From Rebecca billardiae RCC1528 (Eukaryota; Protista; Haptophyta): a stretch of DNA of 64,000 nt. The notes below the pieces were generated by a model. The model had not been told where the DNA came from and searched no databases. It was given only the letters and a program-made list of their open reading frames with translations. This document shows positions 20,015-25,099 of this stretch, piece by piece (the stretch's first letter is position 1; each line of letters begins with the position of its first letter). The DNA is taken from assembly GCA_965240325.2 (NCBI GenBank), contig OZ251226.1, forward strand, positions 2,976,001 through 3,040,000, read 5' to 3'. Made by a program: the position numbers and the translations under genes.

Positions 20015-23000
20015 ATGGGGATGTCGGACGAGGCCGTTGAGGGCGAGGCCCTCCAAGCCCTCGTGCGCAGCATGTCCATGTCCCAGCACCCGACGCAGCC
20101 GAGCCCGTGGCAGTGGGTGGCCGACATCCCGACGTCGGCGATCTCGTTCATGGGGCTGAACTGCCTCGAGTCCATCGCGCTCGCGGGCTATGCCAGCGTG
20201 GTGATTGGGACGGACTCGGAGATCCACGGGGTGTACGTGGCGCTCAACCTGCTGATCTTCGCGTTCTGCATGACGTACTACTCGATCTCCTCGATCCTGC
20301 GCGAGAACACCGTGCAGCTGCTGCTGGCGGTCGGCATGTCGCTGTACGTGACGGCCATGGTTTCGTGGGTCACGAGCGGGAACACGATCGGCACGACGAC
20401 GAACCTCGCGGCGACGCTGGGGCTCTCGCGCCGGCAGGCCAACCTGATGACCCTCGCGACGCAGCTCACGATGCAGTTCCTCATCCTCACGAGCGGCGCG
20501 CAGGCGTGGAACACGTTTGGGTGGCGCGCGTTCCGCAAGTACGGCTTCTCCAACCACGCGCGCGCGGTGCACCAGCACCGGCTGCTGGGCGAGGGGCTGC
20601 TCACGGTGGACGCGATGTTCAACGTGCTCGCGGTCATCGCCGCCTTCTCCTTCCTCCTCCCCGAGACCACCCTCGGCATCATCGGCTCTGCGATCATCTC
20701 GCTGCTCTCGAACGAGCTGTGGACGCTGCTGTGCTACGTGGCGGTCACGCGCGTGATGCGGCGCGACATGCTGCTCGTGCTGCTGCCGTTCGGGCTGGTG
20801 CAGCCGGCGGCGACGGTGTTCAAGCTGATCGAGATCTACGAGTCGCTCTTCGTCTACAACTCGCCGCGCTTCGCCGCGCTGCCGCTCGTGCCCGTCACGT
20901 TTGTGATGGTCGGCGCGACCGCCGAGCGGCTCGTGCTGCTCGTCACGCTGCTGCGCGTGAGCGCGAGCATCGCGGAGAAGCTCGAGGGGTTCAGCGAGGT
21001 GTTCGCGATGCCGGAGGAGTACGGCGCGCACACGTCGCTCGCCGACCGCGGGTGCATCATCGACATGGTGCACGAGGGGCGCACCGTGATGATGCTCTCG
21101 AAGGGCGGCGAGGCGGAGGCGTGGCGCCGCTTCACGCGCCCGATGCAGCGCGTCGCCAAGAAGCTGCCGGGCATGGTGACGCTGGGCTCGTGGCTGCGCT
21201 CGGCGGCGGCGAAGGCGTACACGAAGGCGAGCGCGTGCAGCCGCCTCGTCGTCCGCGGGCGCGGCGCGCCCGGCTCCGCCGGCGCGGGCGGCGGGCTGTG
21301 CGCCGGGCTGCTCTCGTGCCCGATGCGGCTGCTGTCGGCGCTCACCGCCGCGCACTTCCGCTCGCGGCACGTGCAGCTGTCGCACGACCTCACGACGCTG
21401 CGCTGGTCGTGGTCGGACTACATCCTGATCCTCGAGGTGCGCGAGGTGGTCTACCGCGCGGAGCGCCCGCCCGCCGCCGACGACGACGACGACGAGTACG
21501 TCCGCTCGCCGCCCGACGCGGTCACGCTCGACATCGAGCACGGGCCACACCACCGCAAGGTGACGACCACGCTCCGCTTCAAAGACAAGCACACGGCGAC
21601 CACGTGGGCGCGCGGGCTCGCGGCGCTGCTCAAGATCCAGCGGCGGCGCGGGCTGGAGCCGATGCTGCTGCAGCACGTGCTCGACATCTTCCGCCTCGTC
21701 GACGTGCAGCGCCGCGGCGCGCTCACCCGCTCGCAGCTGCTCGACGTGCTCGGCCGGCTCAACTACGAGCCAGGCCCCGAGCTGCAGCGGCGCATCGAGA
21801 CGTCCGCCGAGTTCGAGGAGGGCGTGAGCGTCGACCAGACGCTCAACCTGGTGCGCGAGCTGCGGCAGGCGACGGGCACGTTCGAGCGGCTCCTCCGCCA
21901 GCTCGCCGTCGAGGCCCTCTCCGGCGACAAGAACGAGGGCGGCGACGCGGCCAACGGCACGAACGGCGCGCCCAACGGCGGCGGCGGCTCGCCCAGGGCC
22001 GCGCGGCGGCTCGAGACGGTGCCCGCGCCCTCGCTCGGCGCGGTGGCCGTCGGCGCGGAGCGCGTGGGCAGCGGCAGCGGCAGCGGGCTCGCCATGCTCG
22101 CCGTCAGCGCGCTCGGCGGCGCGAGCCACGGCCCGCCGCCCGACGGCGCCACCCCGACCGACCGCGTGCTCGTGCCTCTCTCGAGCCTCGCTGACATCTG
22201 GGCGCGGGCGCAGGGCGCTGCGGACGTGATGCCCACCTCCGTCTTCGAGCTCGCGCACAACCACCTGGGGTACCTGCCGACGGTGACGAAGCGGCTGCGG
22301 AACCGGCGCACGCGCGGCGAGCTCACCGACGCGACGACGCCCGGCCGCGACGCCGCCGCCTCGGCGGGCGGCGCGGGCGGGCTGCTCGGCGCGCTGAAGG
22401 GCGGCCTCGCTCGGACGAGCGCCGCGTGCGGCGGCTCGCCCGCCGCCAAGAGCGCCGCCAAGGCGCCGCCGGCGAAGCTCGCGCCGTCGAAGACGTGGCG
22501 CAACCTGAAGCAGTCGAACAAGGTGACCGTGGCGGAGACGCTGCAGACCAACGCGCTGCTCGAGCACACCGAGCTCCTCCACCTCTTCCTGCACGACGCG
22601 AACGCGCTCGTGCTGCCGTACAACACGCAGCACGACCTTGACCAGGTGGCGGAGAGGCGGCGCGCGCGCAGGCAGGCGGAGGAGCCGCCGCCGCCGCCGG
22701 CGTCGGCGCTGGGCGCGCTGGGGCAGTGGCTGGGCGGCGGCGCGCGCGCGACGAGCGCGCCGCCGCCCGCGCTCAAGCGGCGCACGCGCGCCCACTCCTC
22801 CGCCGGCACGATCGGCTCGGGCGAGGGCGGCGGCGGCGAGCGCGGCGAGCGCGCGCTCGTCGGCCCGCCGCCCATCGACATGGACCTGCCGCTCACCGAG
22901 TACTACATCGAGTCGAGCCACAACACGTACCTGACGGGTGACCAGCTGCTCTCGGCGTCGTCGGCCGAGATGTACACCAAGGTGCTGCTGATGGGCTGCC

Positions 23001-25099
23001 GCTGCGTCGAGCTCGACTGCTGGGACGGCGCGGACGGCGAGCCGATCATCTGGCACGGCTACACGCTCACCACGTCGATCCCGTTCCGAGACGTGTGCGA
23101 GGCCATCGCCGAGTCGGCGTTCGTCGCGTCGCCGTACCCGGTGATCCTCTCGCTCGAGGTGCACTGCTCGCACGCGCAGCAGGACGTGATGGCGCGCCAG
23201 CTCAAGGAGGTCTTCGGCGAGCAGCTCCTGCCGCCGCGCTCGGAGCGCGCCGACCGCGCGCCGCTGCCCAGCCCCGTCGAGCTCAAGCACCGCGTGCTCG
23301 TGAAGGCGTCGACCGGCGCGCCCGCCAAGAAGGGCAAGCGGCAGCAGGGGATGGCGAGCACGCTCGACCTGCAGCGCTCGTCGAGCCGCGCCACCGCCGC
23401 GGGCGGCGCCACGCCGCGCACCGCCTCGCGCTTCGGACAGGCCGACCTGATCGAGCAGGGCCACCCGGGGCACGCGCCGCCCGCGCACCTCGCCATCACG
23501 GTCGACGGCGCGGACGAGGACGAGTCGAGCGAGGAGGAGGAGGAGGACGACGACGACTCGACGGAGCTGAGCTCGAGCCGCGCGACGCACGAGGCCGTGC
23601 GCGTCTCCGACTCGGCGGCGCACGCGAACGGCGCCGCCGCCGTCCTCGCGTCCACGCCGGAGGACGTCGCCGTCGTCGTCGACGGCGGCAAGGGCGCGCC
23701 GCCCAAGCGCGGCGGCCGGCTCGGGCGGCAGCGCCCAAAGCGGCGCTCCGCCAAGTCGAAGAAGGCCAAGGTCGAGCGGATCGCGCCGTCGCTCTTCGCG
23801 CTGACCTACCTCCGCGGCACCAAGTTCAAGACCCTCGACACCTCCGCGCACCAGTCCAGCGCGCTGATGCAGTCGTACACCGAGACCAAGGCGTCCAAGC
23901 TGCTGCACGAGCAGCTGCACGCGTGGGCGCGGCACAACGCGGGCCACATCTCGCGCATCTACCCGGCGCCCTCGCGCGTCGACTCGTCCAACTACTCGCC
24001 GCACGCGCTGTGGGAGGCCGGGTGCCAGATGGTCGCGCTCAACTACCAGACGAACGACTGGCCGCTGCAGATGAACAGCGCGCTCTTCATGGGCGGCACC
24101 GGCTACGTGCTCAAGCCCGCCGAGCTGCGCGCCGCCAAGATGCGGCGGCGCGGGCTGCTCGGCGGCGGCGGCGGCGGCGCGGCCGCGGCCGCGGCAAAGG
24201 ACGCGGAGCCGTCGCCGCGCTCGTCGTCGCTGCGCAAGGCCGACACGCTGCGCAGCAAGGCCGCCGCGGACGAGCCGGCGCACGCCGAGCTGATCGACGC
24301 GGACACGTGGCACGACTCCTCCACCGCGCTCGACATGACGCCCAACCTCTCGCAGATGACGCTGCGCTTCGTGTGCGCGTCGTGCCTCGTGAAGGCGAAC
24401 GAGGACCGCGCGTCCGTCGAGCCGTGGGCGGATCTGGACGACGCCGAGCGCGCGGAGGAGCCCGGCGTCGGCCCCGTGGTCTCGCCGTTCGTCTCGGTCG
24501 AGGTGTTCGGCGGGCGGTACTCGCAGGTGCGCCAGTCGCCGCAGCACAGGCGCCGCCGCCGCCTCTCCTCCTCCACGCGCCAGGCGACGCGCGCGTTCGG
24601 CGGCGGCGCGCCCGACACGGAGAACCTCGCGACGGCGGGCGAGTGGCGCTCGTCGAGCGTCGTGCAGAACGGGCTGTGCGCCTTCTGGGACGACGACGAG
24701 GTGTGCGAGATCGTCGCGACGCACCCCGAGCTCACGGTCGTGTGGATCGGCGTGTGGCACCGCGCGCGCATGGGCATGCGGCCCACGCTGCTCGCGTACG
24801 CCGCGCTGCCGCTCGCGCTGTGCCGGCCGGGCTGGCGCTCGATCCGGCTGCGCGGCCGCTCGGGCAAGCACGCGCGCTTCTGCAACCTGCTGGTGCACGC
24901 GCAGCGCGCGGTCGTGCCCAACCCCGAGCACGGGCAGCACGGCGTGGCGGACGCGTTGGGCGCCATCAACACGGGCGTGCGCTCGGCGCTCAACTCGGTC
25001 CTGCCGGGGCGGCGCGCGCGCGCGGGCACCAACTCGGCCGCCGACCGCCGCGAGCGGCGCGCGAGCTCGGAGGGCAGGCGCGTGCGACGCCGATCGTGA
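20015..25099 (+). CDS. Phosphoinositide-specific phospholipase C with N-terminal multipass membrane domain (TM-PH-EF-X-Y-C2)
   Basis: X box: [45 protein letters not shown] box: [27 protein letters not shown]2: [10 protein letters not shown]...[10 protein letters not shown]-like [13 protein letters not shown]; EF-hand [12 protein letters not shown]. About 7-8 hydrophobic helices at the N-terminus. One uninterrupted frame. Confidence 0.92.

Follow-up and report, generated by a model that had tools for sequence, protein, structure and literature searches.

A single haptophyte gene predicted to combine a multipass membrane domain with a complete PI-phospholipase C

The control of PI-PLCs is understood as the recruitment of soluble enzymes, and the release of their autoinhibition, by separate receptors, G proteins and kinases, and the known PI-PLCs of the PLC-delta-like type are soluble. 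The gene described here, from the haptophyte Rebecca billardiae RCC1528, encodes a protein that shares with PLC-delta1 (rat, PDB 1DJG/1QAS; also with the PLC-gamma core) the order PH-like, EF-hands, X, Y and C2, the His, Asn, Glu and Asp catalytic/Ca2+ motifs and the Ser, Arg and Tyr motifs of the Y box. It differs from that type in about 320 N-terminal residues predicted to form an eight-helix integral membrane domain, in long low-complexity inserts located within the PH domain, between EF pairs, in the X–Y linker and in C2, and in a degenerate first EF loop. To our knowledge no characterised PLC isozyme has such a membrane domain, and the layout was unexpected because the known enzymes of this type are soluble.

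Two other systems invite comparison. The voltage-sensing phosphatase Ci-VSP has a helical membrane module N-terminal to a cytosolic enzyme acting on phosphoinositides of the inner leaflet, and the GPCR-bigrams of oomycetes and Dictyostelium, such as RpkA, join a GPCR to a PIP kinase. Ci-VSP resembles our protein by analogy of layout only, as the latter has no S4-like arginine ladder and two four-helix bundles instead of one voltage sensor, and a relation in fold or sequence was not detectable. With the GPCR-bigrams, a topic cited in PMC9694693, it shares the concept of a multipass membrane domain and a phosphoinositide-metabolising enzyme in one polypeptide, but its membrane domain is not 7TM, its enzyme is a lipase rather than a kinase and it has no evident ligand-binding surface.

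The gene and its coding status

The window analysed is a stretch of 64,000 nucleotides (contig OZ251226.1, positions 2,976,001 to 3,040,000, assembly GCA_965240325.2), to which all coordinates refer.

20015 to 25099, plus strand: complete intronless coding sequence (open frame, GC3 0.986, background GC3 on both sides)

An initial sequence-only reading had claimed one uninterrupted frame here, and this was borne out: from its first in-frame ATG the frame runs without a stop through 1,694 codons and then ends in a stop codon. The host alga is very GC-rich, and the length of the frame is little proof of coding because the antisense strand also carries an ORF of 1,748 codons. The latter is a by-product, since its first codon positions are the third positions of the sense strand, which are G or C, so that no stops are possible. 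The decisive coding signal was GC3, which was 0.986 overall and 0.96–1.00 per 100-codon bin, with no dip and no 30-codon span under 0.90, and which dropped to background immediately 5′ of 20015 and 3′ of 25099 (flanks 0.47–0.83).

The ease with which long stop-free frames arise in this composition, as on the antisense strand, would also allow two adjacent genes to lie in frame by chance. Similarly, the in-frame Met codons past the membrane domain (residues 332, 351, 359, 377 and 387) would allow the PLC to be made from an internal ATG beside a separate membrane product. The frame shows no internal intergenic signature, its GC3 never approaching that of the flanks, and the comparative evidence given below makes both forms of this artefact very improbable. 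Internal starts at these Met codons could also yield a soluble isoform in addition to the full-length protein. Neither an RNA run for this stretch nor a record of the exact product was found, and the literature searched gave no description of a membrane-domain/PI-PLC fusion. The neighbouring genes are unrelated: downstream lies an ShK/ERD2-like gene, and the upstream side holds nothing that could be recognised.

A membrane domain related to DUF7789

The N-terminal part of the protein is divided as follows.

20015 to 20131, plus strand: N-terminal tail, residues 1–39, predicted to be cytosolic (AlphaFold2, positive-inside tally)
20132 to 20971, plus strand: eight-helix membrane domain, residues 40–319, DUF7789-related (AlphaFold2, alignment, hhalign)

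AlphaFold2 modelled the membrane domain (pLDDT 84, pTM 0.80) as eight long helices (residues 40–66, 70–95, 99–120, 139–167, 180–217, 220–247, 250–280 and 291–319) arranged as two four-helix bundles, preceded by a tail with a low-confidence extreme N-terminus and a short helix at residues 6–22. The 7–8 transmembrane helices first proposed at about 20130–20980 thus agree with the model in extent and in multipass character, and their number is eight and not seven. About 10 Arg/Lys residues were tallied in loops and helix ends on the side of the termini versus 3 on the opposite side, and both ends of the domain are predicted to be cytosolic. The outward loops are of 3, 18, 2 and 10 residues, and all of the motifs conserved in the family would lie on the cytosolic side. 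One lineage (P0026/P0030) has a Cys-rich insert with N-x-S/T sites in loop 7–8, predicted to be outside.

The idea that this region is kin to an uncharacterised orphan membrane family gained clear support. DUF7789 (PF25044) comprises stand-alone eukaryotic membrane proteins of about 300–460 residues that are widespread in fungi, animals and protists, with clusters that include a large one from Ascomycota. An alignment of the fused clade (A4) matched an alignment of DUF7789-positive proteins (A3), the two having no sequences in common, over 270 columns in hhalign (99.9%, E 3.1e-34). In a phmmer search of 1.8 billion proteins the window membrane domain reached the DUF7789-positive protein P0036 (7e-4), its language-model neighbours were DUF7789 clusters (score 0.92), and 11 of 24 relatives matched the Pfam model itself (best E 2.8e-25). 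Residues 1–340 of the window protein gave no match to PF25044 at E up to 10, and a PF25044 search of the whole genome returned zero matches. The positive comparisons show the membrane domain to be homologous to DUF7789, of which it forms a diverged branch.

The two groups have the same number of helices and share motifs, with EN following helix 2, FGWR following helix 4 and a D sitting in helix 5; the fused proteins differ in forming a separate branch, in their C-terminal PLC and in the partial loss of R.E, EP.Y and NFG.GL. Columns F168, W170 and D199 (the last an acidic residue inside helix 5) are invariant in the 24-sequence alignment. The window protein retains E97-N98, F168-G169-W170-R171 and D199, and E97, F168-G169-W170 and D199 are retained across the fused clade. 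The window protein and its Diacronema counterpart no longer have R.E, EP.Y or NFG.GL, which other fused members keep in part. In this pair the R.E after helix 6 is RVM or RLQ and the EP of helix 7 is QP, so that two acidic positions kept by most relatives are lost from the window protein and the Diacronema orthologue, a change that fits a domain acting as a mere anchor.

The membrane motifs quoted in the sequence-only reading, 25 residues in all, were found at residues 94–102, 167–177 and 195–199, and the DUF7789 consensus (EN.FQ, FGWR.YK.IG, LLK.D) agrees with the motifs given there for UPF0658. From this motif resemblance we take DUF7789 probably to include proteins annotated as 'UPF0658 Golgi apparatus membrane protein', a family to which S. 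pombe C1952.10c and fungal relatives belong, and the large Ascomycota cluster is compatible with this. None of the membrane-domain matches was named UPF0658, and the literature searched contained only a gene-table mention of that name.

The original proposal went further, to a one-component sensor or channel analogous to the oomycete GPCR–PIP kinases, a transducer in which the membrane domain would sense a ligand, an ion, voltage or the state of the membrane, or be a channel, and would directly switch the PLC. Several features are compatible with this: the retention of the family-invariant E97, F168-G169-W170 and D199 in the fused clade, the position of acidic D199 within a helix, purifying selection on the domain (see below) and a Cys-rich outer loop that, in one lineage, could bind something. 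Moreover, both PI-PLCs detected in the genome are fused, and so upstream input must reach a membrane-embedded enzyme. However, the structure searches did not bear the proposal out. In Foldseek the best GPCR chains had E about 1 and TM-scores of 0.14–0.19, no channel or receptor fold stood out, and VIA-align gave only four-helix-bundle matches to either half of the domain (Z at most 11.5, below the value of about 13 that the tool gives as noise for helical bundles). With tiny outer loops, conserved motifs on the predicted cytosolic face, no S4-like arginine spacing on inspection and no experimental knowledge of DUF7789 found in the literature searched, we consider a transducer of this kind rather unlikely. 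The membrane domain may still regulate the enzyme, although none of these observations calls for it. The oomycete analogy likewise lost its footing, and a seven-helix GPCR/7TM receptor was rejected on the helix number and the same TM-scores.

The phospholipase C core and the conservation of the fusion

The remainder of the protein contains the following features.

20972 to 21370, plus strand: juxtamembrane and insert-rich stretch, residues 320–452 (BLASTP; GC3 about 1.00)
21371 to 21649, plus strand: PH-like core, residues 453–545 (alignment A6, model, Foldseek)
21656 to 21889, plus strand: EF-hand pair, residues 548–625 (family profile against PDB)
22880 to 23308, plus strand: PI-PLC X, residues 956–1098 (Pfam PF00388, E 2.9e-60)
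23309 to 23800, plus strand: X–Y linker, residues 1099–1262 (read from the translation)
23801 to 24121, plus strand: PI-PLC Y, residues 1263–1369 (Pfam PF00387, E 9.1e-34; PDB alignment)
24332 to 24934, plus strand: C2 with a low-complexity insert, residues about 1440–1640 (family profile against PDB)

The X and Y matches scored far above the gathering scores of PF00388 and PF00387, and the X half matched PLC-gamma2 in the PDB at 165.9 bits, with PDB PLC chains up to 1e-72. The catalytic residues had been read as intact, and SSHNTY (967), ELDCW (999) and WHG (1013) are indeed in place, together with LEVHC (1047) and VLVKAS (1094) in X and SRIYP (1313) and RVDSSNY (1321) in Y; these motifs align with those of PLC-gamma2. 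They were mapped by motif to the catalytic His pair and the Ca2+ and substrate ligands of PLC-delta1 (H311, N312, E341, D343, H356, E390, K438, K440, S522, R549 and Y551). The low-complexity linker between X and Y contains an acidic run and, after it, a basic one.

The other domains named at the outset (PH, EF-hand and C2) fared unequally. The EF family profile (A6) matched calmodulin at about 1e-15 and EF-hand proteins of the PDB at 1e-15 to 5e-22, and an in-genome paralogue matched Pfam EF-hand_7 at 6.7e-07; the first loop of the window copy (12 residues) deviates in the alignment from the canonical Ca-binding pattern and looks unable to bind Ca2+. The C2 family profile (A7) matched the C2 domains of PLC-gamma2 (2e-11) and PLC-delta1 (5e-9), the window copy alone being marginal (Pfam C2, E 0.078). 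For PH, alignment A6 has an RWSW strand and a C-terminal helix with a conserved Trp (R24, W25, S26, W27 and W92 invariant), and a low-confidence model (pLDDT 63) shows a beta sandwich and a long helix, for which Foldseek ranked PLC-gamma2/1 first (prob 1.00, E 2.6e-3) and PH domains next. The sequence profile reached only the PLC-gamma1 PH/EF junction, at a non-significant E of 1.7. Thus, EF, X, Y and C2 stand on profiles, and PH is weakly suggested by the model. Taken with its motifs, the PI-PLC core is apparently complete and active.

Searching the 72-Mb genome for X and Y yielded just two genes, both of them fused, and no other PI-PLC type seems to be present. In the second gene, the diverged paralogue (L003:3921-9056), Pfam recognised EF, X and Y and tblastn located C2, and the N-terminus is hydrophobic. 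The same architecture was also found elsewhere. Diacronema lutheri has an intronless single coding sequence of 5,559 nt (KAG8458079, 1,852 residues) with X and Y, to which residues 30–411 of the window protein align in one continuous BLASTP match (P0001; 49% identity) that covers both the membrane domain and the junction; residues 320–411 are conserved between the two, and a conserved stretch begins about 25 residues past the last helix. When metagenome loci were probed by tblastn with separate domain pieces, at least seven had all of the domains: L005, L006, L014, L016, L017, L021 and L022 carry TM, PH/EF, X, Y and C2 in order on one strand, and L015, L023 and L024 keep the order up to the contig end. 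Counting the paralogue, Diacronema and ten metagenome loci, this domain order is seen 12 times, 6 of them as a single frame. L005, L017, L021 and L022 each form one open frame, with GC3 of 0.94–0.97. In the membrane-domain tree a single branch (support 95/92) divides the 19 stand-alone sequences from the 12 others, of which 10 are fused and 2 truncated.

Recurrence of the order, conservation of the junction at the protein level and clustering of the fused membrane domains all speak against chance juxtaposition or a separate membrane product, and the fusion first read from this one locus proved to be real. On these sequence comparisons we regard it as confirmed that 20015–25099 is one gene for a multipass membrane domain and a complete PI-PLC.

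Between L005 and L022, dN/dS was 0.36–0.42 for the membrane domain, similar to 0.37 for PH-EF and 0.39 for C2; it was 0.15 for X, 0.10 for Y and 0.80 for the X–Y linker, the fastest-evolving part. By these ratios, purifying selection acts on the membrane domain. The fused gene of L016 has inositol-1-phosphate synthase and IP3-receptor-like genes no more than about 8 kb away. An IP3-receptor-like frame is also present in the R. billardiae genome.

A probable membrane-tethered phospholipase C

The explanation that we favour, and hold to be reasonably probable, is that the gene encodes a permanently membrane-tethered, PLC-delta-like integral-membrane PI-PLC, whose topology, substrate, regulation and cellular location we infer. 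The eight-helix DUF7789-branch domain would be embedded in a membrane, its N- and C-terminal ends both cytosolic; beyond it, the conserved stretch and the insert-rich sequence would connect to a PLC-delta-like core (PH-like, EF-hands, X/Y barrel, C2) held permanently at the cytosolic face, where it would cleave PI(4,5)P2 to IP3 and diacylglycerol. Membrane recruitment is the usual control step of soluble PLCs; here it would be fixed, and control would be expected to act through Ca2+, at the catalytic site, C2 and EF-hands, and through the charged X–Y linker. The membrane domain probably does more than anchor the enzyme, because it is under purifying selection and keeps family-invariant residues; for example, it may set the compartment or sense the inner leaflet.

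Alternatively, the fusion could be of the Rosetta-stone kind, with DUF7789 having its own job in inositol-lipid, diacylglycerol or Ca2+ biology, such as moving or modifying an inner-leaflet lipid, and acting in sequence with the PLC. The clustering of conserved motifs toward the cytosolic leaflet, the site of the PLC substrate and product, would suit this, as would the neighbours of the L016 gene and the wide occurrence of stand-alone members, which suggests an autonomous function. However, the structure searches brought up no enzyme or transporter fold for the domain, that gene neighbourhood comes from one contig lineage only and the neighbours of the window gene are unrelated, making this account quite improbable.

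If the enzyme is membrane-tethered as we favour, a conserved lineage with a membrane-built PLC raises the question of how it is kept off and how it is switched on, and the fusion is a ready-made construct on which the interfacial-activation and X–Y-linker models could be tested. It also gives the orphan DUF7789 a first functional association, one that points to the cytosolic leaflet and inositol-lipid signalling and, if the family includes the fungal UPF0658 Golgi proteins, hints at where to seek their phenotype. It is possible, if unlikely, that DUF7789 is an inner-leaflet gating module that senses a lipid, an ion or the state of the membrane and directly controls the attached PLC. In that case IP3/DAG signalling in these algae would run through a one-polypeptide transmembrane transducer, and the stand-alone DUF7789 proteins of fungi, animals and many protists would be an unrecognised player in phosphoinositide and DAG homeostasis.

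A single-exon gene with a complete PLC core

The frame at 20015-25099 (forward strand) is open across 1,694 codons. Its length is weak evidence for a gene, because the window is rich in G+C (~70%) and an antisense ORF of 1,748 codons (19895-25141, reverse strand) mirrors it over the same span. The antisense ORF is free of stops because its first codon positions are the third positions of the sense frame, where A and T hardly ever occur, and it was rejected as a gene, being a composition artefact and a by-product of sense GC3. In the forward frame GC3 was 0.96-1.00 in every 100-codon bin and at least 0.90 in any 30-codon window, with an overall value of 0.986 (24 of the 1,694 codons lacked G or C at the third position). 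The signal starts at about 20015 and stops at 25099; in the flanks even the best codon phase reached at most 0.83 (19520-19970) and at most 0.70 (25070-25430), and total GC falls to 0.44-0.48 in places. Since the GC3 signal is unbroken from 20015 to 25099, with space for neither an intron nor an intergenic gap, this interval is a single coding exon and one gene, and a profile without a dip bears out the uninterrupted frame proposed in the sequence-only reading. No in-frame ATG occurs between the upstream stop and 20015; an internal ATG may also yield an additional, soluble isoform. A database look-up found no record of the exact product.

The protein matched PLC chains in the PDB (best 1e-72), and its X-Y region is composed as follows.

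Forward strand, residues 956-1098: PI-PLC-X domain (Pfam 2.9e-60)
Forward strand, 23309-23800, residues 1099-1262: X-Y linker, a long acidic run followed by a strongly basic run
Forward strand, residues 1263-1369: PI-PLC-Y domain (Pfam 9.1e-34)

Catalytic and substrate motifs were located at residues 967 (SSHNTY), 999 (ELDCW), 1013 (WHG), 1047 (LEVHC), 1094 (VLVKAS), 1313 (SRIYP) and 1321 (RVDSSNY). Animal PLCs have charged, autoinhibitory linkers, of which this one is reminiscent. Five family members gave a profile for the stretch preceding X, which was matched by EF-hand proteins (1e-15 to 5e-22), and the profile for the stretch following Y matched C2 domains, those of PLC-gamma2 (2e-11) and PLC-delta1 (5e-9). 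The first EF loop of the window copy is without the usual ligands, whereas the loops of the paralogue described below and of the related protein P0026 are canonical. The PH domain is the least certain assignment. Residues 440-640 were modelled by AlphaFold2 (pLDDT 63) as a beta sandwich with a long capping helix, after which come the EF helices, and a Foldseek search with this model gave full-length PLC-gamma2 and PLC-gamma1 as best matches (E 2.6e-3, prob 1.00), with isolated PH domains next; the corresponding profile reached only E 1.7 at best against the PDB, all three matches lying at the PH/EF junction of PLC-gamma. Thus, of the PH, EF, X, Y and C2 domains initially read from the sequence, X and Y stood by Pfam and EF and C2 by profile, together with the catalytic motifs, and PH was left with the pLDDT-63 model and the E 1.7 profile match. 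The PLC-delta-like core is complete and its catalytic residues are intact.

Conservation of the fusion

Searching the genome of this alga (72 Mb, 41 contigs) identified a diverged paralogue.

G000:C15:1258920-1264055 (equivalent to L003:3921-9056): paralogue of the window gene, a single frame of 1,711 codons

It begins with a hydrophobic domain containing GLFGWRVFELFG, after which come EF (6.7e-07), X (4e-49) and Y (1e-29). With C2 and a fragment of PH-EF, both detected by tblastn, this gives the same order of TM, PH-like, EF, X, Y and C2 as in the window gene. When 1.84 billion representatives were searched exhaustively by phmmer with the membrane domain, 37 proteins were found. The top match, from Diacronema lutheri (KAG8458079.1; 1,852 residues, 52% identity), is encoded by a single CDS of 5,559 nt, and X and Y are present both in this protein and in P0026 (1,895 residues). 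It carries the UniRef name 'Phosphoinositide phospholipase C', which is automatic, the protein having been deposited only as hypothetical; this pavlovophyte is the nearest public relative for the window gene, at 49-64% identity. The weaker phmmer matches were proteins of 150-580 residues, and several apparently 'stand-alone' matches were prokaryote-style gene calls cutting longer genes.

Metagenome loci, including eight further ones from a JGI metagenome scan, were tested by tblastn using separate domain pieces. In L006, L014 and L016, pieces of PH/EF, X, Y and C2 lie behind the membrane-domain ORF in the same orientation, and the complete collinear series was found in these three and in L005, L017, L021 and L022. 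The series continues up to the contig end in L015, L023 and L024, and the contig ends shortly past the membrane domain in L018, L019 and L020. Four of the loci (L005, L017, L021 and L022) have single open frames with a GC3 of 0.94-0.97. One locus, L004, holds no more than the membrane domain; compared with L016, with which it shares synteny, it lacks about 3 kb comprising the PLC part and part of a RabGAP neighbour, through either a deletion or a collapse in the assembly. The fusion of a TM region to a PLC that had been proposed for the window gene therefore recurs, with the same domain order, in the paralogue, in Diacronema and in seven complete metagenome loci.

A maximum likelihood tree was built from 31 membrane domains; in it, a single branch (95/92) parts 10 fused and 2 truncated members from 19 stand-alone ones, and this unrooted tree agrees with a single origin of the fusion. 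For L005 and L022, which form a close pair, dN/dS (of which only relative values count, because extreme codon bias depresses dS) was 0.36-0.42 in the membrane domain, 0.37 in PH-EF, 0.39 in C2, 0.15 in X, 0.10 in Y and 0.80 in the X-Y linker. The constraint on the membrane domain equals that on the regulatory domains, and the fusion is conserved and under constraint.

Inositol signalling genes and genomic neighbours

The whole genome was searched in six frames with PI-PLC-X and with PI-PLC-Y, and each gave just two places, the window gene and its paralogue; within the reach of these searches, all PI-PLCs of the alga would be membrane-embedded. Three other features were recorded.

G000:C14, L013:1129-2460, forward strand: stand-alone third family member, 443 residues, with GFGWRVYKVVGGD and FGRGL and no PLC
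G000:C3:4133479-4133745, reverse strand: match to the IP3-receptor ligand-binding domain (6.7e-7, over the cut-off) within a 3,644-codon frame
Window 25472-26239, forward strand: downstream neighbour of the window gene, ShK domain (1e-07) then ERD2 domain (5.8e-06)

The stand-alone member has diverged strongly and sits on a long branch of the tree. The receptor-like frame makes it probable that an IP3-gated channel acts downstream of the PLCs in this alga. A search of the genome for G-alpha gave partial GTPase-core matches only, one of them just above the cut-off when summed; these are too ambiguous to speak for or against heterotrimeric G proteins. The immediate neighbours of the window gene are unrelated to it: the ShK/ERD2-like gene starts 370 nt downstream, and none of the upstream ORFs tested had a Pfam match. 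In L016:1-18088 (ENA ERZ28548074), a metagenome contig of another alga, an inositol-1-phosphate synthase gene and an IP3-receptor-like gene (Ins145_P3_rec, MIR) both occur within a few kb of the fused gene, and the three may constitute an inositol-signalling neighbourhood.

The membrane domain and its possible roles

Residues 1-340 of the window protein had no Pfam match, and the protein did not reach the threshold of the Pfam model for DUF7789 (PF25044), an uncharacterised eukaryotic membrane family; it is therefore filed as a diverged relative of that family and not as a member by the curated test. DUF7789 was matched by 11 of the 24 aligned members (best E 2.8e-25), and hhalign comparison of the membrane domains of the fused clade with DUF7789-positive stand-alone proteins, two alignments that share no sequences, gave 99.9% and E 3.1e-34 over 270 columns. 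The language-model neighbours were DUF7789 clusters from Mucoromycota, Chordata, Microsporidia and Ascomycota (1,171 members). The consensus of the stand-alone proteins includes EN.FQ, FGWR.YK.IG, LLK.D, EPAYIIYK and NFG.GLKE; the UPF0658 motifs given in the sequence-only reading fit this consensus, and DUF7789 may be the same family as UPF0658. Word-index searches with profiles gave 1 and 11 proteins, none of them named UPF0658, and one with residues 1-340 gave none; the word filter explains these blanks, as a 52%-identical orthologue exists. The N-terminal eight-helix domain is DUF7789-related. In the literature searched (most subscription journals being beyond reach) we found no function for DUF7789/UPF0658 and no description of a transmembrane PI-PLC.

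The AlphaFold2 model of the domain (24 homologues; pLDDT 84, pTM 0.80) has eight long helices (40-66, 70-95, 99-120, 139-167, 180-217, 220-247, 250-280 and 291-319), in keeping with the 7-8 TM helices initially predicted, and a short amphipathic helix at 170-176 that corresponds to the FGWRAFR motif. Foldseek gave no match below E 0.85 in the PDB, GPCR chains aligning to the model at TM-scores of 0.14-0.19, and a shape search of the ESM Atlas gave no convincing match (TM-score by query at most 0.36). With VIA-align the halves (~36-170 and 181-324) each matched generic four-helix bundles at Z of at most 11.5, which falls under the level stated as uninformative for helical bundles. Readings of the domain as a GPCR, channel or known transporter are unsupported by these searches, so that the earlier proposal of a sensor or channel, by analogy with GPCR fusions, is without structural support; no new fold is claimed. 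Comparison of the halves by hhalign (residues 36-170 against 178-325; window 20120-20990) gave 68.6% and E 4.6e-5; the EN that follows helix 2 is paired with the R.E that follows helix 6, and the FG motifs behind helices 4 and 8 are paired with each other. This weakly hints at an internal 4+4 duplication, which would agree with the two four-helix bundles of the model.

Loops and helix ends carry about 10 Arg/Lys residues on the side of the termini and 3 on the other side, and the P0026/P0030 lineage and L022 have a Cys-rich insert of about 80 residues in loop 7-8 (P0026 ~275-345) with N-x-S/T sites, as expected of a lumenal or extracellular loop. We therefore infer an N-in/C-in topology, with both termini and the PLC core cytosolic. 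Apart from this insert, nothing of notable size was seen to face outwards in the family; the outer loops of the window protein are of 3, 18, 2 and 10 residues. On this topology all family-conserved motifs (E97-N98, FGWR, D199, R.E and NFG.GL) would be at the cytosolic side, D199 sitting about eight residues into helix 5.

The substrate of the PLC core would be PIP2. The domain may be a plain anchor, for which speak its lack of an outward-facing surface and the absence of two acidic family positions from the window/Diacronema orthologue pair. It may also regulate catalysis, as would fit its retention of invariant family residues, the purifying selection on it and the position of its conserved face, beside the enzyme at the cytosolic leaflet. 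The enzyme would stay permanently at the membrane, and its control would move to Ca2+ and the charged X-Y linker.
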